DNA of 64,000 nt, taken from contig SMSO01000014.1 of assembly GCA_004764695.1 (NCBI GenBank), positions 7,182,029 through 7,246,028 of the forward strand, written 5' to 3'. The stretch comes from Schizochytrium sp. TIO01. Taxonomy: Eukaryota; Protista; Bigyra: Labyrinthulomycetes. A program made the position numbers and the translations under genes. The notes below the pieces were generated by a model. It had not been told where the DNA came from, made no database searches, and was given only the letters and a program-made list of their open reading frames with translations. This document shows positions 1-41,108 of the stretch, one piece after another. Every line of letters begins with the position of its first letter. Position 1 is the stretch's first letter.

Positions 1-3000
1 ATGCCCAAGCTGAAACTCTTTGAGAACCATAGTTTTACCGTCTCCATCCAATACTTTCTGGGCTCTCTTGCCAACTCTGGAAGCAAGGGGCTCGCCGACA
101 GGCTTGAAGTCTGCGACTGTGACATTCGCCAACCAAAGGTCTGAACATGCTACTTCAAAAACACCCTCTGCACTTACGTGAAGCCTTTCCTGCCAGGCTC
201 TATCTTGCAGCAACTCTGGATAATGTTCCTGCGCGTGTTGCAGAGTCTCAGCTAGCTTATGACGAAAAGCTTTGCTAAGATCGATAGGGTTGCCTTGAGA
301 GAGAATGAGCTCTTGCTTTTTGATACGATTTCTAAAATATGCTTGATCTTCCTCATCTAATTCCTCTATTTCAAGTTCTTCTTTGGCTCTCTTCAAAATT
401 TCTGTGGCTTTCCTCGACTTGTCAAGTTTCTGGTATAATTCTTCAACATCTGAGACAGAATGTTCTTTCAAACCCAGTACTACATAGTCATATAGATTAG
501 AGAGCTCTTTTGGTGTGTAATTACTCGCGTCATTCAACGTAGCACTCTCAGAGTATCCTTCAAATCGAGCAAATGTTGAACTTATTGCGCAAAGTATCTT
601 GGACAAATGGGCACTAAGAGTATCTTCATGGAGGACTTCGAGCTCTTCCTTGAGAGCACTCTCAAGTTCAGATAACTCGGGTTCTAGCTCCATGGCCTGC
701 TCAGGTGTTCTCAGGGCAACCGATAATCCATCACCAAGTTCTAGCTCAGACAATCGAGAGGTAACGCGCTTTATAGCTTGTTGGCTTCGTTCGCCAATAT
801 TGTTGGGTCGGCCTTCTCCACTCCTCTCGTACCCTTCCCTGCATTGGACAGCCTGAGCAATGAGTTCTTGGCACTGTTTGAAGTCATCTGTGCTGGTCTC
901 TTCATCGACTGGAGCAAGGTTGATGTTTAAATCGTTTACCAAACTTTCAACTTTCACTTTGAATTCTCGCACTGCGCTCTCATCACTTTCGCAAAGGTTG
1001 GCACGAACCCATGGGTACACTACCTGCAGAAGTGAATGCAGGCGACATCGTTCGGCATTCCGCTTTTCGATGAGACTGGGCAAGCCATCAGCAGAGCTTG
1101 CACGAATCTGGCCTTGTAGCGCGTCAAGACTCTCTTTGGAGTTCTTGATGTCAGCGGAAACCTGTCGCAACTTCACTTGGCCAAAGTAGCCCTGAATCGC
1201 CGATCCTACGAATTCCTCAAGCAAGGCAATCCCAGTTTGCAGGGAGTTTCCTCTGACCCCGCCTCGATCCGCGCGCAAGTCTGAGACTTTCTTGGCAAGC
1301 TGCACCACATCAGCGAAACTCACACTCGCTCCATCCGGCCGTTCTCTGAGGCGAACAAGAAGACGTAAGCAAACCAGCAAAAAACGAGGTTGAAGCAGTA
1401 ATAAAGGCAGAAGCAAAAGTTAGGATTCCCTATATCTCAATAACACAATTCGAATAATTACACGATCCCAAACAAAGACTGACCGCATGAACTTACCCAG
1501 ATCCATCCAAAGTAGCAAGCCCGGCGCCATCAACGCCGTCTTGCTCGTTCTTGGGCTCTGCAGAAGGCTTGCTTTCTGCCGACTCTATGGAGGCACAGGA
1601 ATCGGTGTCTGACGAGGAATCGGCAATCTCCTCTCTAGGAGAATCCTCAGAATAGTCCGGATCCATCTCATCTTCATAAAAACAACTGCGGCGTTTTGTA
1701 AACGAATGTGAATAAACGAAAGAAGAGAATAAAAGCGTCTGTCAGAAAAACGATGAAAGCATGTAAAGACGGCCTCGCAAGTCCATGGAGACATGGAGAG
1801 AACCAGCGAAGGCAAGGCTCTGCGCAAGCTGAGAACAGCAGCAGAGGCAACGAAACTTACTAGATACTAACAGACGGACATGTTTTTCTCAGAGACTTTG
1901 CGACGGCCTTTGCGCCCTCACCGCCAATGTTGTTTTGCCAAAGACTGTGCGTATAAATGAATAAGTTTGTTTTGTTCATTCGTTGTCAGAGTAGACAGGT
2001 CCGGTCAGTTGATTCTGTTTTGTTTTCTTTTCCCTTACAATAAAAAGCAATCACCTCTTCTTCTGCTGCTGCCTATCAAATTCTATAGATTTTCTTTTGC
2101 CCTTCCTTCTTCTCTTTGTAAAAAAGAAAAGACTTTTTTGCCTTTCTTTGCGTACCCAACTACGTAAACTACTTAGGTAGTGTACCAGCAGTACTACAAA
2201 CACCAAGCACTCAAAAGAAAGAAAGAAAAAGCTTGGTCCTGACTATTACGATAGCTTTCCCTCGTGGATGATTCCACAACGTACTTAAAAGTTTGAAGGT
2301 TCTTGCATCCCTCGAGTGCCTTTGCGACGGCCTTTGCGCCCTCATCGCCAATGTTGTTTTGAAAAAGACTGTGAGTATAAATGAATAAGTTTGTTTTGTT
2401 CATTCGTTGTCAGGAAAGACAGGTCCAGTCAGTTGATCCTGTTTTGTTATGTTTTTCCTCACAATAAAAAGTAATCACCTCTTCTTCTTCTGCTGCTGCT
2501 GCCTATCAAATTATATAGATTTCCTTTTGTCCTTGCTTCTTCTCTTTCTAAAAAATAAACGAGTTCTTTGCCTTTCTAAAGTACCCAACTACGTTAACCA
2601 CGTAGGTAGTGTACCAGCAGCTCTTTCGTTTTGCTTTCTTTCCCCTACTACAAACACCAACCACTAAAAAGAAAGAAAGAAAAGAGTTCGTCCTGCCTAT
2701 TACGATAGCTTTCCCTCGTGGATGATTCCACAACGTACTGTAATTTTTGAAGGTTCTTGCATCCCTCGAGTGCCTTTGCGACGGCCTTTGCGCCCTCATC
2801 GCCAATGTTGTTGTTGTAAAGACTGTGAGTATAAATGAATAAGTTTGTACAGGTCCAGTCAGTTGATCCTGTTTTGTTATGTTTTTCCTCACAATAAAAA
2901 GCAATCACCTCTTCTTCTTCTGCTGCTGCTGCTGCTGCTGCTGCGTATCAAATTATATAGATTTCCTTCTTCTCTTTGTAAGAAAGAAAAGACTTCTTTG

Positions 3001-6000
3001 CCTTTCTTTGCGTACCCAACTACGTAAACTACTTAGGTAGTGTACCAGCAGTACTACAAACACCAAGCACTCAAAAGAAAGAAAGAAAAAGCTTGGTCCT
3101 GACTATTACGATAGCTTTCCCTCGTGGATGATTCCACAAACGTACGACAATTCTTGAAGGTTCTTGCATCCCTCGAGTGCCTTTGCGACGGCCTTTGCGC
3201 CCTCATCGCCAATGTTGTTGTCAGAAAGACTGTGAGTATAAATGAATAAGTTTGTTTTGTTCATTCGTTGTCAGGAAAGACAGGTCCAGTCAGTTGATCC
3301 TGTTTTGTTTTGTTTTTCCTCACAATAAAAAGCAATCACCTCTTCTTCTTCTGCTGCTGCTGCCTATCAAATTATATAGATTTCCTTCTTCTCTTTGTAA
3401 AAAAGAAAAGAGTTCTTTGCCTTTCTTAACTACGTAGGTAGTGTACCAGCAGCTCTTTCGTTTTGCTTTCTTTCCCCTACTACAAACACCAACCACTAAA
3501 AAGCAAGAAAGAAAAGAGTTCGTCCTGCCTATTACGATAGCTTTCCCTCGTGGATGATTCCACAAACGTACTCTAATTTTTGAAGGTTCTTGCATCCCTC
3601 GAGTGCCTTTGCGACGGCCTTTGCGCCCTCATCGCCAATGTTGTTTTTCCAAAGACTGTGAGTATAAATGAATAAGTTTGTTTTGTTCATTCGTTGTCAG
3701 GAAAGACAGCTCCAGTCAGTTGATCCTGTTTTGTTTTCTTTTTCCTCACAATAAAAAGCAATCACCTCTTCTTCTGCTGCTGCCTATCAAATTATATAGA
3801 TTTCCTTCTTCTCTTTGTAAAAAAGAAAAGACTTCTTTGCCTTTCTTTGCGTACCCAACTACGTAAACTACTTAGGTAGTGTACCAGCAGTACTACAAAC
3901 ACCAAGCACTAAAAACAAACAAAGAAAAAGCTTGGTACTGACTATTACGATAGCTTTCCCTCGTGGATGATTCCACAACGTACTTAAAAGTTTGAAGGTT
4001 CTTGCATCCCTCGAGTGCCTTTGCGACGGCCTTTGCGCCCTCCGAGCCAATGTTGTTGGCAGAAAGACTGTGAGTATAAATGAATAAGTTTGTTTTGTTC
4101 ATTCGTTGTCAGGAAAGACAGGTCCAGTCAGTTGATCCTGTTTTGTTTTGATTTTCCTCACAATAAAAAGCAATCAGCTCTTCTTCTTCTGCTGCTGCTG
4201 CTGCTGCGTATCAAATTATATAGATTTCCTTTTGCCCTTCCTTCTTCTCTTTGTAAAAAAGAAAAGACTTCTTTGCCTTTCTTTGCGTACCCAACTACGT
4301 AAACTACGTAGGTAGTGTACCAGCAGCTCTTTCGTTTTGCTTTCTTTCCCCTACTACAAACACCAACCACTAAAAAGAAAGAAAGAAAAGAGTTCGTCCT
4401 GCCTATTACGATAGCTTTCCCTCGTGGATGATTCCACAAACGTACTCTAATTTTTGAAGGTTCTTGCATCCCTCGAGTGCCTTTGCGACGGCCTTTGCGC
4501 CCTCATCGCCAATGTTGTTGCTACGAAGACTGTGAGTATAAATGAATAAGTTTGTTTTGTTCATTCGTTGTCAGGAAAGACAGCTCCAGTCAGTTGATCC
4601 TGTTTTGTTTTGATTTTCTTCACAATAAAAAGCAATCACCTCTTCTTCTGCTGGTGCCTATCAAATTATATAGATTTCCTTCTTCTCTTTGTAAAAAAGA
4701 AAAGACTTCTTTGCCTTTCTTTGCGTACCCGACTACGTAAACTACGTAGGTAGTGTACCAGCAGTGCTTTCGTTTTGCTTTCTTTCCCCTACTACAAACA
4801 CCAACCACTAAAAAGAAAGAAAGAAAAGAGTTCGTCCTGCCTATTACGATAGCTTTCCCTCGTAGATGATTCCACAAACGTACTGTAATTTTTGAAGGTT
4901 CTTGCATCCCTCGAGTGCCTTTGCGACGGCCTTTGCGCCCTCATCGCCAATGTTGTTTTGCCAAAGACTGTGAGTATAAATGAATAAGTTTGTTTTGTTC
5001 ATTCGTTGTCAGGAAAGACAGGTCCAGTCAGTTAATCCTGTTTTGTTTTCTTTTTCATCACAATAAATAGCAATCACCTCTTCTTCTGCTGCTGATGCTG
5101 CCTATCAAATTATATAGATTTCCTTCTTCTCTTTCTAAAAAAAAAAGACTTCTTTGCCTTTCTTTGCGTACCCGACTACGTAAACTACTTAGGTAGTGTA
5201 CCAGCAGTACTACAAACACCAAGCACTAAAAAGAAAGAAAGAAAAAGCTTGGTCCTGACTATTACGATAGCTTTCCCTCGTGGATGATTCTACAAACGTA
5301 CTACAAATGTTGAAGGTTCTTGTATCCCTCGAGTACCTTTGCGACGGCCTTTGCGCCCTCATCGCCAATGTTGTTCATGTAAAGACTGTGAGTAGTGTAA
5401 TGAATAAGTTTGGTTTTTCATTCGTTGTCAGGAAAGGCAGGTCCAGTCAGTTGATCCTGTTTTGTTTTGTTTTTCCTCACAATAAAATAGCAATCACCTC
5501 TTCTTCTTCTGCTGCTGCTGCTGCCTATCAAATTATATAGATTTCCTTCTTCTCTTTGTAAAAAAGAAAAGACTTCTTTGCCTTTCTTTGCGTACCCAAT
5601 TACGTAAACTACTTAGGTAGTGTACCAGCAGTACTACAAACACGAAGCACTAAAAAGAAAGAAAGAAAAAGCTTGGTCCTGCCTATTACGATAGCTTTCC
5701 CTCGTGGATGATTCCACACACGTACTACAATTCTTGAAGGTTCTTGCATCCCTCGAGTGCCTTTGCGACGGCCTTTGCGCCCTCATCGCCAATGTTGTTC
5801 ACTACAAGACTGTGAGTATAAATGAATAAGTTTGTTTTGTTCATTCGTTGTCAGGAAAGATAGGTCCAGTCAGTTAATCTTGTTTTGTTTTCTTTTTCCT
5901 CACAATAAAATAGCAATCACCTCTTCTTCTGCTGCTGATGCTGCCTATCAAATTATATAGATTTCCTTCTTCTCTTTGTAAAAAAGAAAAGACTTCTTTG

Positions 6001-6759
6001 CCTTTCTTTGCGTACCCAACTACGTAAACTACTTAGGTAGTGTACCAGCAGTACTACAAACACCAAGCACTCAAAAGAAAGAAAGAAAAAGCTTGGTCCT
6101 GTCTATTACGATAGCTTTCCCTCGTGGATGATTCCACAAACGTACTACAATTCTTGAAGGTTCTTGCATCCCTCGAGTGCCTTTGCGACGGCCTTTGCGC
6201 CCTCATCGCCAAGCCTGTTCCCAGAAAGACTGTGAGTATAAATGAATAAGTTTGTTTTGTTCATTCGTTGTCAGGAAAGACAGGTCCAGTCAGTTAATCC
6301 TGTTTTGTTTTCTTTTTCCTCACAATAAAATAGCAATCACCTCTTCTTCTGCTGCTGATGCTGCCTATCAAATTATATAGATTTCCTTCTTCTCTTTGTA
6401 AAAAAGAAAAGACTTCTTTGCCTTTCTTTGCGTACCCAACTACGTAAACTACTTAGGTAGTGTACCAGCAGTACTACAAGCACCAAGCACTAAAAAGAAA
6501 GAAAGAAAAAGCTTGGTCCTGACTATTACGATAGCTTTCCCTCGTGAATGATTCCACAAACGTACTCTAAAGTTTGAAGGTTCTTGCACCCCTCGAGTGC
6601 CTTTGCGACGGCCTTTGCGCCCTTCGAGCCAATGTCGTTCCCAGAAAGACTGTGAGTATAAATGAATAAGTTTGTTTTGTTCATTCGTTGTCAGGAAAGA
6701 CAGGTCCAGTCAGTTGATCCTGTTTTGTTTTGTTTTTCCTCACAATAAAAAGCAATCAG

Positions 6760-6814
<55 letters not shown>

Positions 6815-9800
6815 TATCAAATTATATAGAGATTTCCTTTTGCCCTTCCTTCTTCTCTTTGTAAAAAAGAAAAGACTTCTTTGTCTTTCTTTGTGTACCC
6901 AACTACACCAGCAGTACTACAAACACCAAGCACTAAAAAGAAAGAAAGAAAAAGCTTGGTCCTGACTATTTCGATAGCTTTCCCTCGTGGATGATTCCAC
7001 AACGTACTTTAATTTTTGAAGGTTCTTGCATCCCTCGAGTGCCTTTGCGACGGCCTTTGCGCCCTCATCGCCAAAGTTGTTGTTCTCAAGACTGTGAGTA
7101 TAAATGAATAAGTTTGTTTTGTTCATTCGTTGTCAGAAAAGACAGCTCCAGTCAGTTGATCCTGTTTTGTTTTGATTTCTTCACAATAAAAAGCAATCAC
7201 CTCTTCTTCTTCTGCTGCTGCTGCCTATCAAATTATATAAATTTCCTTTTGCCCTTCCTTCTTCTCTTTCTAAAAAAGAAAAGAGTTCTTTGCCTTTCTT
7301 AACTACGTAGGTAGTGTACCAGCAGCTCTTTCGTTTTGCTTTCTTTCCCCTACTACAAACACCAACCACTAAAAAGAAAGAAAGAAAAGAGTTCGTCCTG
7401 CCTATTCCGATAGCTTTCCATCGTGGATGATTCCACAAACGTACTACAATTCTCGAAGATTCTTGCATCCCTCGAGTGCCTTTGCGACTGCCTTTGCACC
7501 CTCATCGCCAATGGTGTTCCACACGGAAGAATACCCCCTAAGACTGTGAGTATAAATGAATAAGTTTGTGATGTTCATTCGTTGTCACGAAAGACAGCTC
7601 CAGTCAGTTGATCCTGTTTTGTTTTCTTTTTCTTCACAATAAAAAGCATTCACCTCTTTTTCTGCTGGTGCCTATCAAACTATATTGATTTCCTTGTCCC
7701 CTTCCTTCTTCTCTTTCTATACAAGAAAAGCGTTCTTTGCCTTTCTAAATACCCAACTACGTAGACTACGTAGGTCGTGTACCAGCAGTGCTTTCGTTTT
7801 GATTCCTTTCCTCTACTACAAACACGAACCACTAAAAAGCAAGAAAGAAAAAGGTCGGTCCTGCCTATTCCGATAGCTTTCCATCGTGGATGATTCCTTA
7901 AACGTACTTCAGATAAGTAAGGTTCTTGCATCCCTCGAGTGCCTTTGCGACGGCCTTTGCGCCCTCATTGCCAATGTTGTTGCTTCCAAGACTGTGCATA
8001 TAAATAAAAATGTTTTTTTTTTTTTTTTTTTTTCATTCGTAAGGAAAGACAGGTCCAGTCAGTTGATCCTGTTTTGTTTTCTTTCTCCCCACAATAAAAA
8101 GCAATCACCTCTTCTTCTGCTGGTGCCTATCAAATTATATAGATTTCCTTTTGCCCTTCCTTCTTCTCTTTGTAAAAAATAAACGAGTTCTTTGCCTTTC
8201 TAAATACCCAACTACGTAGACTACGTAGGTCGTGTACCAGCAGTGCTTTCGTTTTGATTCCTTTCCTCTACTACAAACACGAACCACTAAAAAGCAAGAA
8301 AGAAAAAGGTCGGTCCTGCCTATTACGATAGCTTTCCCTCGTGGATGGTTCTACAAACGTACTCTAGATAAGTCAGGTTCTTGCATCCCTCGAGTGCCTT
8401 TGCGACGGCCTTTGCGCCCTCCCAGCCAAAGTTGTTCTCAGAAAGACTGTGAGTGGGTATAAATGAATAAGTTTGTTTTTTCATTTGTCGTTAGGAAAGA
8501 CAGCTCCAGTCAGTTGATCCTGTTTTGTTTTGTTTTTCTTCACAATAAAAAGCAATCACCTCTTCTTCTGCTGGTGCCTATCAAATTATATAGATTTCCT
8601 TTTGCCCTTCCTTCTTCTCTTTGTAAAAAGGAAAGACTTCTTTGCCTTTCTAAAGTACCCAACTACGTAAACTACGTAGGTAGTGTAGCAGCACTGCTTT
8701 CGTTTTGATTCGTTTCCCCTACTACAAACACGAACCACTAAAAAGCAAGAAAGAAAAAGGTCGGTCCTGCCTATTACGATAGCTTTCCCTCGTGGATGAT
8801 TCCACAAACGTACGACAAAAATTGAAGGTTGTTGCATCCCTCGAGTGCCTTTGCGACGGCCTTTGCGCCCTCATCGCCAATGTTGTTGATACAAAGACTG
8901 TGAGTGTAAATTGATAAGTTTGTATTTTCATTCGTTGTCAGGAAAGACAGCTCCAGTCAGTTGATCCTGTTTTGTTTTATTTTTCCTCACAATAAAAAGC
9001 AATCAGCTCTTCTTCTTCTGCTGGTGCCTATCAAATTATATAGATTTCCTTTTGCCCTGCCCTTCCTTCTTCTCTTTGTTTAAAAAAAGGAAAAAAAAGA
9101 GTTCTTTGCCGTTCTTAAGTATCCAACTACGTAAACTACGTAAGTAGTGTACCAGCAGTGCTTTCGTTTTGATTTCTTTCCCCTACTACAAACACCGCTA
9201 AAAAGAAAGACAGAAAAAGGTTGATCCTGCCTATTACGATAGATTACCCTCGTGGATGATTCCACAAACGTACTTCAGATAAGTCAGGTTCTTGCATCTC
9301 GCGAGTGCCTTTGCGACGGCCTTTGCGCCCTCATCGCCAAGGATGTTGCTATCAAGACTGCGAGTATAAATGAATAAGTTTGTTTTGTTCATTCGTTGTC
9401 AGGAAAGACAGCCCCAGTCAGTTGATCCTGTTTTGTTTTCTTTTTCCTCACAATAAAAAGCAATCAGCTCTTCTTCTTCTGCTGCTGCTGCCTATCAAAT
9501 TATACAGATTTCCTTTTGCGCGCGCTTCCTTGTTTTCTTTCTAAAAAGGAAAATAATTCTTTGCGTTTATAAAGTACCCAACTACGTAAACTACGTAGGT
9601 AGTGTACCAGCACTGCTTCCGGATCCCTACTAAAACACAAAACCCTCAAAGCAAAGAAAGAAAGAAAAAGGTTGGTCCTGCCTATTATGATAGCTTTCCC
9701 TAGTGGATGATTCCACAAACGTACTGTAAAGTTTGAAGGTTGTTGCATCCCTCGAGTGCCTTTGCGACGGCCTTTGCGCCCTCACTACCAAAGAATTTAC

Positions 9801-10046
9801 AACTGAGACTGTTTTTGCTTGTTTGCATGTTTGTTGGTTAAGTAAGAGTAAGTATATGTCATTTCCAACTTCTTCATTGGTGCCACTACTAGAACAAAAC
9901 TATTCTTCTTCTACAATGCTGACTACTACAACACATCGATGACGCGATGCCTCCTTCTTCTGTCTCCTCCCTCCTGCATCGTGTACTTACAATATCTCCG
10001 TTGTATCTTCTGTGATGTCCTCGATTTTGAATGCCGTATTCATCAT
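1..10046 (-). CDS. Gene A copy 1: multi-exon LRR(19)-acidic linker-helical-protein kinase gene, 3' end beyond window start
   Basis: Exons in transcription order: 10046-9991 (MMNTAFKIEDITEDTTEI, donor gtaagt); LRR exons 9808-9725, 9357-9274, 8897-8814, 8446-8363, 7991-7908, 7543-7445 (99 nt), 7091-7008, 6649-6566, 6229-6146, 5809-5726, 5385-5302, 4967-4884, 4529-4446, 4067-3984, 3655-3572, 3229-3146, 2822-2739, 2368-2285, 1944-1861 (capping repeat); acidic linker 1685-1497; large exon 1345-<1 (ERPDGASVSFADVVQ...TMVLKEFQLGH), in the same frame as the 925-aa ORF of copy 2. All introns are GT..AG and phase 2; no stops seen in the small exons. Confidence 0.88.
1861..9808 (-). repeat. Array A1: 19 tandem ~410-460 bp units, each one LRR exon ([28 protein letters not shown]) plus a near-identical intron with a (CTT)n(CTG)n tract
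   Basis: Recurring + strand blocks ttccacaaacgtac|..., ...aagactgtgagtataaatgaataag and cttgcatccctcgagtgcctttgcgacggcctttgcgccctc. Confidence 0.97.
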
Positions 10047-11295
10047 GTTGCAGCAGTGAGTGTCACCTTTGATGGATAGAGCAAAGGAATTGATCACTCG
10101 CGTTGATTGTCTTTGCTTTGTCTTCGTCTTCGTGTTGCTTTGGTACTCGAAAGAGAGAGAGAGAGAGAGAGTAGTTTGAGTCTTCGCTCGCGCTGCTGAT
10201 CAGGAACGAAGACTTCTGCTCTCTTCTTCTTTTTCTTCTCCTTCTTCTGAGCAGCAAGGAAGGAGGAACGGATGGACTCTCTCTCGATGCCTCGCAAGTG
10301 CCTCTGCAGACCACGAGCAACGAACGCGTGGACGGGTGTGGCGCGTGAGAGGTCGCGGGGGCGTGGATATCGTGCGTGCGCGCTGCCTCGTGTTGCGGGT
10401 TTGCGAGGGTGGCTGGCTTTGGCGAGAGTAGTAGGTTACTGGGTATGATAGTTGGTTGTATATGTAGGTTAAGCGCTGCTAATGTTCTCGAAGATCCGTT
10501 GAGTCAATTTTTTCCTGAGAGCGCAAGGTGTAAAAATGGATTCTGCTCTTGAAGAAAGACGAGGAGGCGTTGTGCTTCTACCAAGTCACACACAATGCAG
10601 AACGTGGTAGGAAGGTCCCTATCCATTTGTGATCGTGTATGGGTGCTATTGTTTTGGTTTGATAATATATAGCATTGGGTAGGGTTTTGTTGAGCAAAAG
10701 GAGGTCGAGTTTCGATTGTCATGGCGTTTTGTGTAACGAGTAGTAGGCAAGAAGAGGTCCTTGTATCGGGGTCAATTTGACAGAAGAGCCAAAAACTTGT
10801 AGTCTTTTCGTTGTTTTTGGTGAGGTCTTGAAGCGACGAAAACTCGTAACTGTGTCATACAAGAAATAAATTGCTTGTCGGGAGTAGGTTTTTGTCTATC
10901 AGATAGTAATAGGTTTGTGATGCGATCTATGATAGATTATTTTGAGATCGGGAAAGCTTGGGAGAGAATGGAGATCAAGTCGACAATTTTCGGATTTCAA
11001 AGATGTGTTGAGTTGCTTCACGGCTTCAACATGAAGAAAGCGGAGAGGCGCTTTCAAGGATCGGAGCTACTGGCGGCTGCGACCAAAGGTGTTCCAGAAA
11101 GAAGGGAAGGAAAGTTTCAAACAGAGGAGAATCTTTGACCGAGAGTAGATGCCTGATTGCCTTTCTTGTATTGCTTTTAACCCTCTTCGGGCAGGTTTTA
11201 TTTCATAAAATTAATCTTTGATGTGTATTGTATTGTGATATCAACCGTGGAGTTGCTTTCTTTTTGTGCTAGGGTAAAAAATAAAAGGAGAAAAA

Positions 11296-11863: not shown

Positions 11864-15725
<3,862 letters not shown>

Positions 15726-34840: not shown

Positions 34841-37800
34841 TTATTCCAATCTAAAGTTTGCGCCAACAATATCTGGTGTTAGCAAAGGTGACAATAACTC
34901 TCTCAGAACGAGTCGAAGATTTCTATCCTGAATATGTGCATTCCAGTACTCCCGCAGACGTTCTGCGCGGAGCAACTGCCACGCCTCACGAACCTGCTCA
35001 AATGAATCAGGAAAAAATGGATCTTGCCCAAGCTTTTTCAAGCAAGTTCTCACATGAGCATGACAAGCTCGTGAATTCTGAGAACTAAACTCAAGACACC
35101 AAGCGCAGAAGTGATGACCACAAGTATCAGTACCACACTTTACAGCGCAGCAACCGGCAAAATCGTGTACATATGCCTTACAGTTCGGACAACATGTGCT
35201 CAAGATCTTCTCTTGAATATGGAGTAAATGCCGTTGTGCGTCGCGATTCTGTTCATCTGCACGCAAAACTTCTGCTATGCGCCTTTGGATCTCCTTCTCC
35301 GCCCAAACTGCTGCTTCATTTTCTGCCTTCATCTTCGCAATCAACAAAAGATGATTCAAAGCTGTTGGTGCAAGACGAGTGATTTCTTGACCTGATATTC
35401 TTCCCCCACATTCAGGTTTCATACATGTCATCGTTCCATCAGCATCCACTCTTACGTTAGCAAGTGGCTGTGACGCCGCTTCTACTGCAGATTTAATACA
35501 GTCTCTGCAAAGGAAGTCTCCCTCCTCGCAGCTCGTGCCCTCGGAAAGCAGATGCTCCTCCATGCATACTAGACATATTTTGACAGGGATCTTAGGAGCT
35601 CCAAAAGCTTCATGTTGGAGTGCTTGGTGAGCAGTTGGACGCTGGCCAGGGTCTGTTGCTGTAAGAGCATCGATAAGTTTCTGCATTGCAGCGGTTCGCT
35701 CAGTAGGATACAGCTCCTTTAAGCTTATGCCCACAGAGTACATATCCATCGCTGTTTCAAACCTATCTACAGGCCCATTCTGCAACTCGGGGGCAACGTA
35801 CCGTGGCGTTGCCTGGAGTGATGTGTAAGTTGCAGTGTAGTCTGCAACCTTGATGCCGTCAAAGTCGCCGATCAATGGTGTCCCGTTGCTTGTGAGAAAA
35901 ATGTTTTCTGGTTTGATATCACAATGCACAATGCCATGGGTATGCAAATCCGCCACACCGATAAGCAGGCCCATAGCAAGTCGGTCGCGCACTGCTTTGC
36001 CTTCGTTAGGATGACTCTCAATCCACTTGGCAAGGTCACCTTGCTCGTAGAAAGGCATGAGGATACATCCACGCGGTTCTCCATTAGAGGTATCCACAAA
36101 AGCGCCAGTGATACGTATCACGTGCTGAGACACCACGTTTCCCATATTTGCAGCTTGCCTGTAAAATATTTTGTGTTGGCTCGAATGACCGAGTTGAAAT
36201 TGTTTCAAAACCATAGTTTTACCAACGTTGTCAAGAACCTTTTGTACTCTCTTGCCACCTCTGGAAGCAAGGGGTTCGCGGACAGGCTTGAAGTCCGAGG
36301 CTGTGACATTCGTCAACCAAAGGTCAGAACATGCTACTTCAAAAACACCCTCTGCACTTACGTGAAGCCTTTCCAGCCAGGCTCTATCTTGCAGCAACTC
36401 TGGATAATGTTCCTGCGCGTGTTGCAGAGTCTCAGCAAGCTTATGACGAAAAGCTTTGCTAAGGTCGATAGGGTTGCCTTGAGAGAGAATGAGCTCTTGG
36501 TTTTTCATTCTATTTCTAAAATATGCTTGATCTTCCTCATCCAGGTCCTCAGCCACTAGTTCTGCTTCGGCGATTTTTAATCTTTCTGTGGCTTTCCTTG
36601 ACTTGTCGAGTTTCTGGTATAATGCTTCAACATCTGAGACAGAAGGTTCTTTCAAACCCAGTACTACATAGTCATACAGTCCAGAGAGCTCTTCTGGTGC
36701 GCACTTGCTCGCTTCATTCAACGCAGCACTTTTAGAATATCCTTCAAATCGAGCAAATGTTACACTTATTGCGCAAAGTATTTCGGACAATTGGGCACGA
36801 AGTATATCTCCTTGTAGAGCTTCGATTTCTTCTTGAAGAGCACGCTCAAGTTCAGACAACTCCGGTTTTAGCTCCATGGCCTGCTCCGGTGTCCTCAGGG
36901 CAACCAATAATCCATCACCAAGCTTCAGCTCAGACAATCGAGAGATGACGCGCTTTACAGCTTGTTGGCTTCGTTCACCAATGTTGTTGGATTGGCCTTC
37001 TCCACTCCTCTTATACTCTTCGACGCATTTGACAGCCTGAACAACGAGTTCTTGGCAGTGTTTAAAGTCATCTGTGCTGGTCTCTTCCGTGACTGGCGCA
37101 GGTTTGATATTTAGATGATCTACCAAACTTTCGACTCTCACTTTGAATTCTCGCCCTATATCTTCATCACTTTCGCAAAGTTTTGCGCGAACCCATGGGT
37201 ACACAACCTGCAAAAGCGAATGCAGGCGACTTCGTTCGGCGTTCCGCTTTTCGATGAGGCTGGACAAGCCATCAGCAGAGCTTGCACGAATCTGGCCTTG
37301 TAGTGCGTCAAGACCCTCTTTGGAGTTCTTGATGTCAGCGGAAAGCTGTTGCAACTTCACTTGGCCAAAGTAGCCTTGGATCGCCGGTCCTACGAATTCC
37401 TCAAGCAAGGCAATCCCAGTCTGCAGGGAGTTTTCTCTGACCCCGCCTGGGTCCGCGCGCAAGTCCGAGACTTTTTTGGCAAGCTGCACCACATCAGCGA
37501 AACTCACGCTCCCTCCATCCGGCCGTTCTCTGAGGTGGACAAGAAGACGTAAACAAACGAGCAAAGTGAAGACATTTGAAGCAGCAACAGAGGCAGAAGC
37601 AAAAGTTAGGATCTCCAAAATATCTCAACAACACAATTTGTGGAATGAATGATCACACGATCCCTAACAAAAAACGCATGAACTTACCCAGATATGTTCT
37701 CTCCAGGAGAACGCACCCTTTCGAACAATTCTTTAAAAGACAAATATGCATCATAGAGACTGCGTCTTGTAAACGAATAAAAAAACGAACGAAAGAGAAA

Positions 37801-40800
37801 AACAGTACTTGATAGAATAACGATGACCGCATTCAAAGATAGCTTCGCAAGTCTATGGAGACACAGAGAGAACCAGCGAAGCCAGGGCTCTGCGCAAGAA
37901 GATTCATCAAACCCGCGAGACTCTATAGCAAGCTCGCCGCTATCGACGCCATCTTGCTCACTCTTCGGCTCTGCAGAAGGCTCGCTTTCTGTGGAGGCAC
38001 AGACATCGGTCTCTGATGAGGAGTAAATATCCTCTCCAGGAGAACACACGCTTTCGAACAATTCTTTAGGGGTTCTACGAAAGCTGTCATAGCTGCGTTT
38101 TGTAACGAATGTGAATACACGAATGAAAGAGAATAAGAGCGTTTGTTAGAAGGACGATTAACGTATCTAAAGACCGCATTGCAAGTCCATGGAGACATGG
38201 AGAGAACCATAGATGACAAGGCTCTGCGAAAGCTAGGACCAGCAGCAGAGGGAACGGAACTTACTGGACTCGAACAGAAGGACATGCTTTGTGCAGAAAC
38301 TTCGCGACGGCCTTTGCGCCCTCTGAGCCAATGTTGTTGTTGTTAAGACTGTGAGTATAAATGAATAAGTTTGTTTTGTTCATTCGTTGTCAGGAAAGAC
38401 AGGTCCAGTCAGTTGATCCTGTTTTGTTTTGTTTTCCTCACAATAAAAAGCAATCAGCTTTTGTTCTGCTGCTGCTGTTGCTGCTGCCTATCAAATTATA
38501 TAGATTTCCTGCTTCTCTTTGTAAAAAAGAAAAGACTTCTTTGCCTTTCTTTGCGTACCCAACTACGTAAACTACTTAGGTAGTGTACCAGCAGTACTAC
38601 AAACACCAAGCACTCAAAAGAAAGAAAGAAAAAGCTTGGTCCTGACTATTACGAAGCTTTCCCTCGTGGATGATTCCACAAACGTACTTCAAATAATTCA
38701 GGTTCTTGCATCCCTCGAGTGCCTTTGCGACGGACTTTGCGCCCTCATCGCCAATGTTGTTGTTGTAAAGACTGTGAGTATAAATGAATAAGTTTGTTTT
38801 GCATTCGTTGTCAGGAAAGGCAGCTCCAGTCAGTTGATCTTGTTTTGTTTTGTTTTTCTTCACAATATAGCAATCAGCTCTTCTTCTTCTGCTGCTGCTG
38901 CTGCCTATCAAATTATATAGATTTCCTTTTGCCCTTCCTAGTTTTCTTTCAAAAAAAGAAAAGAGTTCTTTGCCTTTCTCAAGTACCCAACTACGTAAAC
39001 TACTTAGGTAGTGTACCAGCAGTACTACAAACACCAAGCACTAAAAAGAAAGAAAGAAAAAGCTTGGTCCTGACTATTACGATAGCTTTCCCTCGTGGAT
39101 GATTCCACAAACGTACTTCAATTGTTGAAGGTTCTTGCATCCCTCGAGTGCCTTTGCGACGGCCTTTGAGCCCTCCGAGCCAATGTTGTTTTGAGAAAGA
39201 CTGTGAGTATAAATGAATAAGTTTGTTTTGTTCATTCGTTGTCAGGAAAGACGGGTCCAGTCAGTTGACCCTGTTTTGTTTTGTTTTTCCTCACAATAAA
39301 AAGCAATCACCTCTTCTTCTTCTTCTGCTGCTGCTGCCTATCAAATTATATAGATTTCCTTCTTCTCTTTGTAAAAAAGAAAAGACTTCTTTGCCTTTCT
39401 TTGCGTACCCAACTACGTAAACTACTTAGGTAGTGTACTACAAACACCAAGCACTAAAAAGAAAGAAAGAAAAAGCTTGGTCCCGACTATTACGATAGCT
39501 TTCCCTCGTGGATGATGCCACAAACGTACTGTAAAGTTTGAAGGTTCTTGCATCCCTCAAGTGCCTTTGCAACGGCCTTTGCGCCCTCCGAGCCAATCTT
39601 GTTCCACTGAAGACTGTGAGTATACATGAATAAGTTTGTTTTGTTCATTCGTTGTCAGGAAAGACAGGTCCAGTCAGTTGATCCTGTTTTGTTTTGTTTT
39701 TCCTCACAATAAAAAGCAATCACCTCTTCTTTTGCTGCTGCTGCTGCCTATCAAATTATATAGATTTCCTGCTTCTCTTTGTAAAAAAGAAAAGACTTCA
39801 TTGCCTTTCTTTGCGTACCCAACTACGTAAACTACGTAGGTAGTGTACCAGCAGTACTACAAACACCAAGCACTCAAAAGAAAGAAAGAAAAAGCTTGGT
39901 CCTGCCTATTACGATAGCTTTCCCTCGTGGATGATTCCACAAACGTACTTCAGATGAGTCAGGTTCTTGCATCCCTCGAGTGCCTTTGCGACGGCCTTTG
40001 CGCCCTCATCGCCAATCTTGTTGCTCATAAGACTGTGAGTATAAATGAATAAGTTTGTTTTGTTCATTCGTTGTCAGGAAAGACAAGTCCAGTCAGTTGA
40101 TCCTGTTTTTTTTTTTTTTTCCTCACAATAAAAGGCAACTCTTCTTCTTCTTCTTCTGCTGCTGCTGCTGCGTATCAAATAATATAGATTCCCTTCTTCT
40201 CTTTGTAAAAAAGAAAAGACTTCTTTGCCTTTCTCAAGTACCCAACTACGTAAACTACTTAGGTAGTGTACCAGCAGTACTACAAACACCAAGCACGCAA
40301 AAGAAAGAAAGAAAAAGCTTGGTCCTGACTATTACGTTAACTTTCCCTCGTGGATGATTCCACAAACGTACTACAAAGTTTGAAGGTTCTTGCATCCCTC
40401 GAGTGCCTTTGCGACGGCCTTTGAGCCCTCCGAGCCAATGTTGTTTTGAGAAAGACTGTGAGTATAAATGAATAAGTTTGTTTTGTTCATTCGTTGTCAG
40501 GAAAGACGGGTCCAGTCAGTTGATCCTGTTTTGTTTTGTTTTTCCTCACAATAAAAAGCAATCACCTCTTCTTTTGCTGCTGCTGCTGCCTATCAAATTA
40601 TATAGATTTCCTGCTTCTCTTTGTAAAAAAGATAAGACTTCTTTGCCTTTCTTTGCGTACCCAACCACGTAAACTATTTAGGTAGTGTACCAGCAGTACT
40701 ACAAACACCAAGCACTAAAAAGAAAGAAAGAAAAAGCTTGGTCCTGACTATTACGATAGCTTTCCCTCGTGGATGATTCCACAAACGTACATTAAAGTTT

Positions 40801-41108
40801 GAAGGTTTTTACATCCCTCGAGTGCCTTTGCGACGGCCTTTGCGCCCTCTGAGCCAATGTTGTCTCCCAAAATCCTGTGTTTGTTTGTTTGTTTGTTTGT
40901 GAACAAGTGAGAGTAAGTATATGCCATTTCCAACTTCTTCATTAGTGTCACTACTAGGTCAAAACTATTCTTCTTCCACAAAGCTGACTACTACAACACA
41001 TCGACGACGCGATGCCTCCTTCTTCTGTCTCCCCCCTTCTGCATCGTGCACCTACCAAATCTCCGTCGTATCTTCTGTGATGTCCTCAATTCTCTCTGCT
41101 TTGGTCAT
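34841..41108 (-). CDS. Gene A copy 2 (complete): LRR(7)-acidic linker-helical region-non-RD Ser/Thr kinase-RING1/RING2 (RBR-like) protein, ~1244 aa (1193 if 37760-37912 is spliced)
   Basis: Exons 41108-41056 (MTKAERIEDITEDTTEI); LRR exons 40874-40791, 40455-40372, 40032-39949, 39613-39530, 39200-39117, 38771-38688, 38348-38265; linker 38092-37688; terminal exon 37529-34841 (the 925-aa ORF minus its first ~30 intronic codons). Kinase motifs MVLK, HCDIKPENI, DFD, YVAPE, DMYSVG, RPTA; CLVC..C..CRDC..CMKPEC RING; CPNC..GCC..C..CGHHFCAWC RING2-like. Confidence 0.92.
38265..40874 (-). repeat. Array A2: 7 tandem ~415-430 bp LRR exon+intron units
   Basis: Same unit as array A1. Confidence 0.97.

Follow-up and report, generated by a model that had tools for sequence, protein, structure and literature searches.

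Uniform scaffold and hypervariable predicted contact codons in an array of leucine-rich repeat exons at a chromosome end of Schizochytrium sp. TIO01

Introduction

How can a few codons of a tandem exon array differ from copy to copy while the DNA on both sides of them is almost uniform? This question is raised by an array, here termed A1, on the minus strand of a 64,000-nt stretch of the genome of Schizochytrium sp. TIO01 (assembly GCA_004764695.1, contig SMSO01000014.1, positions 7,182,029 to 7,246,028). The whole stretch is referred to as the window, and A1 occupies positions 1861-10046 of it. On the minus strand A1 has the layout of a gene, with a short exon 1 followed by 19 leucine-rich repeat (LRR) exons. 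It appears fairly probable that the pattern results from concerted evolution of the scaffold, combined with diversity-maintaining selection at contact codons and a shuffling of alleles from a shared pool.

The window is a chromosome-end ribosomal DNA (rDNA) region with two 18S-5.8S-28S units, three 5S genes and several tRNAs. At the chromosome ends of Aurantiochytrium limacinum, rDNA is interspersed with spacers of 366-529 bp named LORE-TEARS, which were reported to be without similarity in GenBank and described as non-coding, with a possible role in chromosome-end maintenance (bioRxiv 10.1101/2023.06.15.545109). A literature search found no published treatment of LORE-TEARS as genes.

Results

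Eighteen of the 19 LRR exons of A1 are 84 nt long and one is 99 nt. The introns measure 323-379 nt (GTACG...CACAG) and are in phase 2 throughout, all 19 splice-site pairs are conserved, and the sole insertion, of 15 nt, is in frame. Tandem Repeats Finder assigned periods of 420-451 bp to the repeat. An initial annotation, made from the sequence alone, had described hypervariability of the strand codons that flank each intron. All 18 exon-junction strings which it listed (QTLH/LDSNI to QTFN/LWQNN, including LRGYSSVWNT; slashes mark splice sites here and below) could be re-derived from the minus strand, and the codons named in it (TGG, TAC, TCT, CGT, GTA and GAG at one position; CAA, AGC, GGG, ATG and GTG at the other) were all found.

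Diversity was computed over the 16 canonical exons of A1. It is highest in exon codons 2 and 3, which correspond to LRR positions 7 and 8 (pi 0.64 and 0.67), followed by codon 26 (position 3; pi 0.55), the split codon (position 5; pi 0.50) and codon 25 (position 2; pi 0.32). The 14 variable nt per exon have a mean pi of 0.54 and account for 65% of the exon diversity, as compared to a pi of 0.044 for the remaining 66 nt and of 0.019 for the exon core. The variable codons are the x positions of the motif LxxLxLxxN, with the intron splitting them. The variable patches end abruptly, from one base to the next: the 131 junctions examined in 18 arrays show a pi of about 0 for TCTT and likewise for the intron's first 40 nt and last 10 nt. 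That the core is near-invariant including its synonymous sites, as had been claimed, holds true, with a pi of 0.019 for its fourfold silent sites as well. Two further codons, which the initial annotation did not list, are moderately variable, namely codon 5 (N/K/R/D) and codon 8 (D/S). At codon 8, the G-D/S-E-G position, GAT (Asp) and TCG (Ser) differ by three bases without any intermediates (family pi about 0.5; example exons are window 3984-4067 and 3572-3655). This dimorphism is more in keeping with two lineages of repeats of old date than with change that is still under way.

Each LRR exon of A1 encodes one 28-residue repeat of the type found in ribonuclease inhibitor (RI) and NLR proteins, that is LxxLxLxxN followed by x-L/I-G-x-x-G-x-x-x-L, starting with Leu. 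Searched singly, the exons score 12.9-23.4 bits against Pfam LRR_6 (PF13516), whose cut-off of 23.4 bits is reached by one exon, and their sequence matches in the PDB include axonemal LRR proteins, NOD2, RanGAP1 and RI. A structure model was made for a transcript-backed relative, the peptide P0081 described below, which was folded with an alignment of its hits. In the LRR part of this model the confidence (predicted local distance difference test, pLDDT) is above 90 for residues 11-110 and 86 for residues 111-120, and the alternation of strand and helix recurs every 28 residues. According to DSSP, the strand lies on x3-L4-x5, with x7-x8 directly after it, and the helix begins at the G-x-E-G-A segment; Foldseek matches of the model are NOD2, NLRP1, NLRP3 and RI (E about 1e-6 to 1e-4 for NOD2, NLRP1 and RI). 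In standard LRR geometry, x3 and x5 project from the concave sheet and x7, x8 and x10 sit in the strand-to-helix loops of the same rim. This rim is the main contact zone in complexes of RI. The assignment of the variable codons to the x positions of an RI-type LRR, which had been proposed before, thus agrees with both motif and fold, as they fall exactly on xxLxLxx, and from the model and this geometry we infer that they are ligand-contact positions.

A family sample of 17 loci, comprising 169 exons in 18 arrays of 1-22 units, was used for comparisons beyond A1; stops and hexamers were counted over 150 exons of the family. A second array of the same class, A2 (six exons), lies within the window at 38688-40874. 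The aligned introns of A1 differ pairwise by 1.5-17% (mean 7.7%) and by indels and variable (CTG)n tracts, so that the earlier description of them as almost invariant was overstated. The family mean intron distance is 3.8%, A1 introns come as close as 0.9% to introns from other loci and chromosome ends, and the LRR introns of A1 and A2 differ by 6.8%. The silent sites of the unique downstream exon, which encodes a kinase and an E3-like module, differ by 22% between the copies adjoining A1 and A2 (dS, silent substitutions per silent site, 0.27; ratio of replacement to silent rate, dN/dS, 0.33). The scaffold is far more uniform than these silent sites and has therefore undergone concerted evolution, its copies having been made alike after the genes had duplicated. 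Intron and core are therefore homogenised genome-wide rather than slowly evolving. For this reason the contrast between variable codons and introns, to which the initial annotation had pointed, does not serve as a measure of rate, the intron being no neutral clock (0.9-7% versus a dS of 0.27).

The variable codons are decoupled from this scaffold. Where two introns are less than 0.5% apart (131 pairs), 62% of the sites in the 6 nt that follow CTT are different; for the upstream variable patch of such pairs the figure is 33%, compared to about 50% in the other distance bins. One cluster of introns at most 1% apart, with 28 members from 11 loci, adjoins 21 different dipeptides. The number of distinct variable hexamers is nevertheless limited to 73 in 150 exons, of which the common ones keep identical codons (CGTAGC 11 times, GACAAC 10 times, TCTGAG nine times). 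In locus L002 a tract of three units has been copied recently; two of its 1284 scaffold nt have changed, the variable sites within it are unchanged, and both of its ends lie inside exon cores. Copying thus carries the variable codons along with the units, so that their diversity cannot persist by escaping conversion, and neutral sites inside the unit would be expected to be as uniform as the introns. A diversity of 0.55 inside a homogenised, co-copied unit therefore needs either selection for diverse arrays or an extra mutational input. An apparent 150-fold excess of changes at variable sites in the best duplicate of L002 (10/68 versus 2/1284) was dropped as an estimate of rate, as the differences lie at the tract ends.

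A comparison of the arrays, made to obtain positional orthologues from which rates could be estimated cleanly, yielded few clear multi-unit blocks, all of them inside L002. No such block is common to different loci, except for a weak match between L004 and L014 (4 of 6 elements, three units), and the order of the variable codons of A1 is not matched by any other of the 18 arrays at the 17 loci. A1 and A2 lie in successive rDNA units and have 19 and six units, respectively, with unrelated variable codons, whereas the rRNA genes are near-identical.

The family is large. In the 64-Mb, 37-contig genome, at least 344 copies of the 45-nt LRR core were found with at most three mismatches, as well as at least 60 copies of the kinase-E3 exon. 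One same-class array of 19 units (L001:1202-8875; G000:C7:1069202-1076875) has in-frame stops in three exons and lacks AG or GT at the usual offsets in 11 of its 19 exons; this decayed-looking array suggests a birth and death of arrays. The window also contains a second LRR class on the plus strand (12285-15110 and 43470-46740), built of 385-bp units with a different core and intron. Its exons share the format of those of A1 (CAG/T CTT xxx xxx AAC ... xx/GTAAGT), and here too it is the split codon and the pair of codons following CTT that vary, the rest being uniform.

The exons of A1 and the putative exons downstream of it are as follows (window coordinates).

9991..10046, minus strand: exon 1, read from the sequence; ATG at 10046, 18 codons plus 2 nt (MMNTAFKIEDITEDTTEI..), donor TT/GTAAGT
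9725..9808, minus strand: LRR exon 0 (LSCKFFGSEG..QTL+H), the first and most diverged repeat
9274-9357, 8814-8897, 8363-8446, 7908-7991, minus strand: LRR exons 1-4, 5′ units which look older
7445..7543, minus strand: LRR exon 5, 99 nt, with the 15-nt in-frame insertion (LRGYSSVWNT)
7008-7091, 6566-6649, 6146-6229, 5726-5809, minus strand: LRR exons 6-9, 84 nt each
5302-5385, 4884-4967, 4446-4529, 3984-4067, minus strand: LRR exons 10-13, 84 nt each
3572-3655, 3146-3229, 2739-2822, 2285-2368, minus strand: LRR exons 14-17, 84 nt each
1861..1944, minus strand: terminal half-LRR exon (LWQNNIGGEGAKAVAKSLRKTCPSVSI), 84 nt, 3′ end TA/GTAAGT
1497..1685, minus strand: putative acidic linker exon, 189 nt, phase 2 to 2
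1..1345, minus strand: start of a large exon (coiled region, protein kinase, Cys-rich E3-like tail), acceptor at 1345; it leaves the window, with the remainder in L022

LRR exons 1-4 have introns 8-17% different from the others, and three of these exons end in a T-Y-L type 3′ end. The introns of LRR exons 6-17 (2285..7091) measure 323-378 nt and differ from each other by 1-10%, most pairs by 2-8%. The length variation of A1 introns is due in part to a (CTG)n microsatellite, with tracts of eight and 16 copies at window 2920-2944 and 6765-6813, that is at the equivalent place in different introns. No plus-strand copy of the LRR core was found within A1 in a core pattern search.

Downstream of the terminal exon, the putative linker exon has a homologous acceptor (..CGCCGCAG/T) and the donor GG/GTAAGT and is in frame with both neighbours. 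The large exon shares 87% nucleotide identity with window 36185-37693. Its protein kinase is matched by Pfam Pkinase (E 8e-29); only kinase families were matched in this exon, the E3-like part giving no Pfam match at E 0.01.

Evidence for transcription of such genes comes from P0081, a 399-residue transcript peptide of Aurantiochytrium (MMETSP), which was found by a protein search with one 32-residue exon, the sole exon long enough as a query. It contains four such repeats, a linker and a Cys-rich E3-like tail, and its N-terminus (MTKVTRIIDIKEDTTEV) is similar to that encoded by exon 1 of A1. The genomic locus of P0081 is L018 (G000:C31:8497133-8500945), about 8.5 Mb along contig C31, where three of its repeats each occupy an 84-nt phase-2 exon and the terminal half-repeat has an exon of its own, with identical residues. 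L018 has only four LRR exons, its introns measure 146-268 nt, and the linker leads straight to the E3-like tail without a kinase. The LRR cores of this non-subtelomeric relative differ at silent sites and its introns differ in length, so they are not homogenised; L018 may show the ancestral state.

The transcript also bears on the end of A1, which carries an apparent in-frame TAG stop (window 1861-1865). In L018 the terminal half-repeat exon ends GA/GTAAGT and the message resumes from the acceptor ..AAAACGCAG/T; the donor position at the terminal exon of A1 is the same. As the TA/GTAAGT of A1 is homologous to this used donor, the TAG is probably spliced out, and the product, as judged by homology, would probably be an LRR-kinase-E3-like protein.

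Assembled contigs of four public runs were additionally mapped to window 4400-10200, where they break at repeats, cross-map between paralogues and indicate neither strand nor expression level. Paralogues of A1 are spliced: in contigs of run X9 exons are joined precisely where predicted, with variable codons other than those of A1, and one such junction (TYLI/LRSN) matches array L005. Differing letters clustered at the variable codons of these contigs were considered as somatic variation and are explained by the cross-mapping of paralogues. No same-strain DNA control was found, as no public run shared more than 22% of the window's words.

Discussion

The favoured explanation can be laid out as follows. 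A1 would serve as sensor array in one gene of a large subtelomeric family that encodes RI/NLR-type LRRs with one repeat per exon, and would most likely be spliced onto a linker, followed by a protein kinase and a Cys-rich E3-like module. Through unequal exchange and gene conversion, intron and exon core would be kept near-uniform, both at a single chromosome end and from one end to another. Selection for arrays with diverse contact residues would hold near saturation the five x codons of the strand motif LxxLxLxxN, which straddle each intron and are predicted to contact a ligand, and much of this diversity may be a common pool of short alleles re-assorted by exchanges that end in the invariant exon core.

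The case for selection comes mainly from the fact that diversity has persisted in a unit which is homogenised and whose variable codons are copied along with it. A signal of selection at the level of amino acids is given by four features. The variable sites are placed on xxLxLxx. The fourfold silent third base stays T in the variable codons 2, 25 and 26 (pi 0.16, 0.15 and 0.08), whereas bases 1-2 of the same codons have a pi of 0.39-0.72. Polar or aromatic residues (N, T, S, D, G, Y, Q, E, R) occupy the variable positions, where aliphatic ones are few and Pro does not occur. Finally, stops are avoided: the 150 family exons contain two, compared to 17.1 expected (P 6e-6), which is a seven- to eight-fold under-representation. 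The absence of stops from A1, as noted in the initial annotation, was confirmed, but by itself it is weak evidence (2.8 expected, P 0.06).

Several observations weigh against the favoured explanation. At the variable codons the Nei-Gojobori dN/dS is 1.1-1.9 and saturated, so that a ratio of 1 or less, which the initial annotation had set against diversifying selection, is neither found nor excluded. A one-step allele-pair test, which is independent of copy number, gave a silent fraction of 0.12-0.14 as compared to 0.20-0.22 expected, a difference that is not significant. Codon 3, Leu-27 and Leu-24 vary strongly at their silent sites too (pi 0.62, 0.6 and 0.38), with variants that are linked to neighbours, for example AAATTA versus GAATTG; these variable silent sites fit old linked haplotypes as well as they fit selection. 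No splice junction specific to A1 was present in the contigs of the four runs over window 4400-10200. Furthermore, the kinase-E3 exon downstream of A1 carries a single in-frame TAA at codon 772 (L022:2129-2131), where the copy adjoining A2 has CAA, and the A1 copy may thus be decaying. Of the earlier proposal of strong diversifying selection there remains that some force which keeps diversity is required, since the flanks are homogenised and the variable codons are co-copied; dN/dS and the allele-pair test do not add support.

These observations are partly what would be expected if constraint were simply relaxed, with the x positions having drifted to saturation and the rest being kept uniform by homogenisation, purifying selection or both. 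A dN/dS close to 1, a silent fraction not significantly below its neutral value, silent sites that vary as much as replacement sites in parts of the patch (codon 3, Leu-27), and stops or broken splice sites in arrays such as L001 all agree with drift. Neutral sites which are copied along with their unit should however match the introns (pi 0.04-0.08) and yet reach 0.55, the variable sites lie exactly on xxLxLxx with edges sharp to the base, and in three of the four variable codons the fourfold third base is conserved while bases 1-2 vary, so that we consider relaxed constraint alone unlikely. The extra input could instead be mutational, through programmed hypermutation or templated micro-conversion of the strand codons, possibly in somatic cells. 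This would account for whole-codon differences next to introns less than 0.5% apart, for third bases of codon 3 and Leu-27 that vary as well, and for hexamers that act like movable 6-nt alleles in unrelated contexts. A targeted mutational mechanism, which the initial annotation had offered next to selection, nevertheless finds no support here and appears improbable: with only 73 distinct hexamers in 150 exons, many recur with identical codons (CGTAGC 11 times), the recently copied three-unit tract is unchanged at its variable sites, and stops are avoided. Each of the four bases is found at variable sites, without the A-only pattern of a diversity-generating retroelement (DGR) or a pattern of C deamination, and a template repeat was not noticed, with no search having been aimed at one or at a reverse transcriptase.

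It has further to be considered whether the array is coding at all. The published description of LORE-TEARS as spacers without similarity in GenBank would fit with a non-coding satellite, in which the open frame and the LRR-like motif are incidental or the relic of a dead gene. The P of only 0.06 for the absence of stops from A1 taken alone, the premature stop in its downstream exon and the absence of an A1-specific transcript from the contigs of the four runs point in the same direction. Such a satellite would not be expected to share its exon format with P0081, which is colinear with genomic exons, nor to have spliced paralogues, nor to avoid stops across the family, nor to conserve 19 of 19 splice-site pairs and an insertion of 15 nt in frame, nor to resemble an RI/NLR-type LRR in both sequence and fold. 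This explanation is thus very improbable. Scaffold homogenisation together with selection for diverse contact codons and re-assortment of alleles remains the reading that we favour.

If this reading is correct, every chromosome end of this protist bears hypervariable receptor genes, and hypervariability confined to predicted contact codons is the pattern expected of a fast-diversifying recognition receptor. An evolutionary principle of fungal NLRs and brown algae would recur here with an RI/NLR-type LRR and with an intron in the homogenised unit. The scheme of a uniform scaffold with hypervariable contacts would thereby reach a third eukaryotic lineage in a new type of repeat and be tied to subtelomeric and rDNA recombination. 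The organism can be cultured and carries viruses, and one could then measure in it directly how fast, and by what mechanism, the receptors diversify. More tentatively, the rDNA-flanking arrays might be a germline contingency repertoire of intracellular LRR-kinase-E3 receptors, in which subtelomeric exchange with breakpoints in the cores deals new combinations of contact alleles, allowing anticipatory recognition in a single-celled stramenopile, plausibly against resident mirusviruses; we regard this extension as rather doubtful. Additional variants could arise by the skipping of exons, which would preserve the frame since all exons are 84 nt in phase 2.

Among known systems, the closest likeness in mode of evolution is found in repeats of high internal conservation (HIC) of fungal NLRs, such as those encoded by the HNWD genes het-d and het-e of Podospora anserina. 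These near-identical sensor repeats undergo concerted evolution within and between loci, carry few hypervariable codons on the interaction surface, vary in number and are re-assorted between family members (PMC12222747, PMC4986451). The A1 family shares the concerted evolution (near-identical introns common to 11 loci; scaffold 0.9-7% versus a dS of 0.27), the few hypervariable codons at a predicted interaction surface, the varying number of units and the re-assortment. However, fungal NLRs have WD40, ANK or TPR repeats and no LRR (PMC4986451), whereas the A1 repeat is an RI-type LRR, each repeat has its own exon with a 340-nt intron as part of the homogenised unit, the partner is a kinase with an E3-like module and not NACHT or NB-ARC (Pfam matched kinase families only), and the genes lie in rDNA spacers at chromosome ends. 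The HIC cut-off is an identity above 85% between repeats over at least 100 residues. The A1 repeats fall below it, with a mean amino acid identity of 78% (61-93%; 90% outside the five variable positions; 86% for exon nucleotides), because five of 28 residues vary.

In Ectocarpus, also a stramenopile, each 24-residue repeat of the LRR-ROCO and LRR-kinase genes has a 72-nt exon of its own, and these exons are shuffled; the concave face was found to be under positive selection, and a role as candidate immune receptors was proposed (Zambounis et al., 2012, PMC3341825). A1 resembles them in having one LRR per exon of fixed length and symmetric phase (18 of 19 exons with 84 nt, phase 2), exon shuffling within and between loci, variable positions on the predicted ligand face and a proposed immune role. 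The Ectocarpus exons have their boundaries outside the strand, whereas each 84-nt exon of A1 specifies a 28-residue repeat of RI type, and the strand motif is interrupted by the intron. The introns of Ectocarpus were not reported to be homogenised and contain inactivated or reverse LRR exons, of which none were noticed in A1, and the partner domain is a ROCO GTPase there and a kinase with an E3-like module in the A1 class.

Plant resistance (R) proteins have hypervariable solvent-exposed x residues on the LRR strand and are encoded by clustered families subject to unequal exchange. Their LRRs are plant-type repeats of 23-25 residues, usually encoded in large exons and not near-identical in DNA. 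The A1 class is similar to them in its hypervariability on xxLxLxx and in being a clustered family with unequal exchange. The hypervariable xxLxLxx residues of R proteins (NB-LRR, Cf-type) have been reviewed (PMC3645687). The plant cases show a dN/dS significantly above 1, in contrast to the saturated 1.1-1.9 of the A1 class.

Transcription activator-like (TAL) effectors have near-identical DNA repeats with two adjacent specificity codons, the repeat-variable diresidues, and recombination re-assorts the repeats. Being bacterial, intron-free and made of 34-residue helical repeats that read DNA bases, they share with the A1 class a likeness of architecture and not of descent. The 28-residue repeat with its N-x-I-G-D-E-G-A-x-A-L-A motif is like that of RI, NOD2, NLRP1 and NLRP3; repeats of these proteins are, unlike those of A1, diverged and without confined hypervariable codons, and vertebrate NLR exons carry a pair of repeats. 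The variable lymphocyte receptor (VLR) gene of the lamprey is incomplete in the germline and is completed in somatic cells by copying of flanking LRR cassettes; the germline array of A1 is complete from start codon to terminal exon. What is new here is the combination of an RI/NLR-type 28-residue repeat, a strand-motif intron inside the homogenised unit, a kinase and E3-like partner, and a position in rDNA spacers at chromosome ends which has been published as non-coding.

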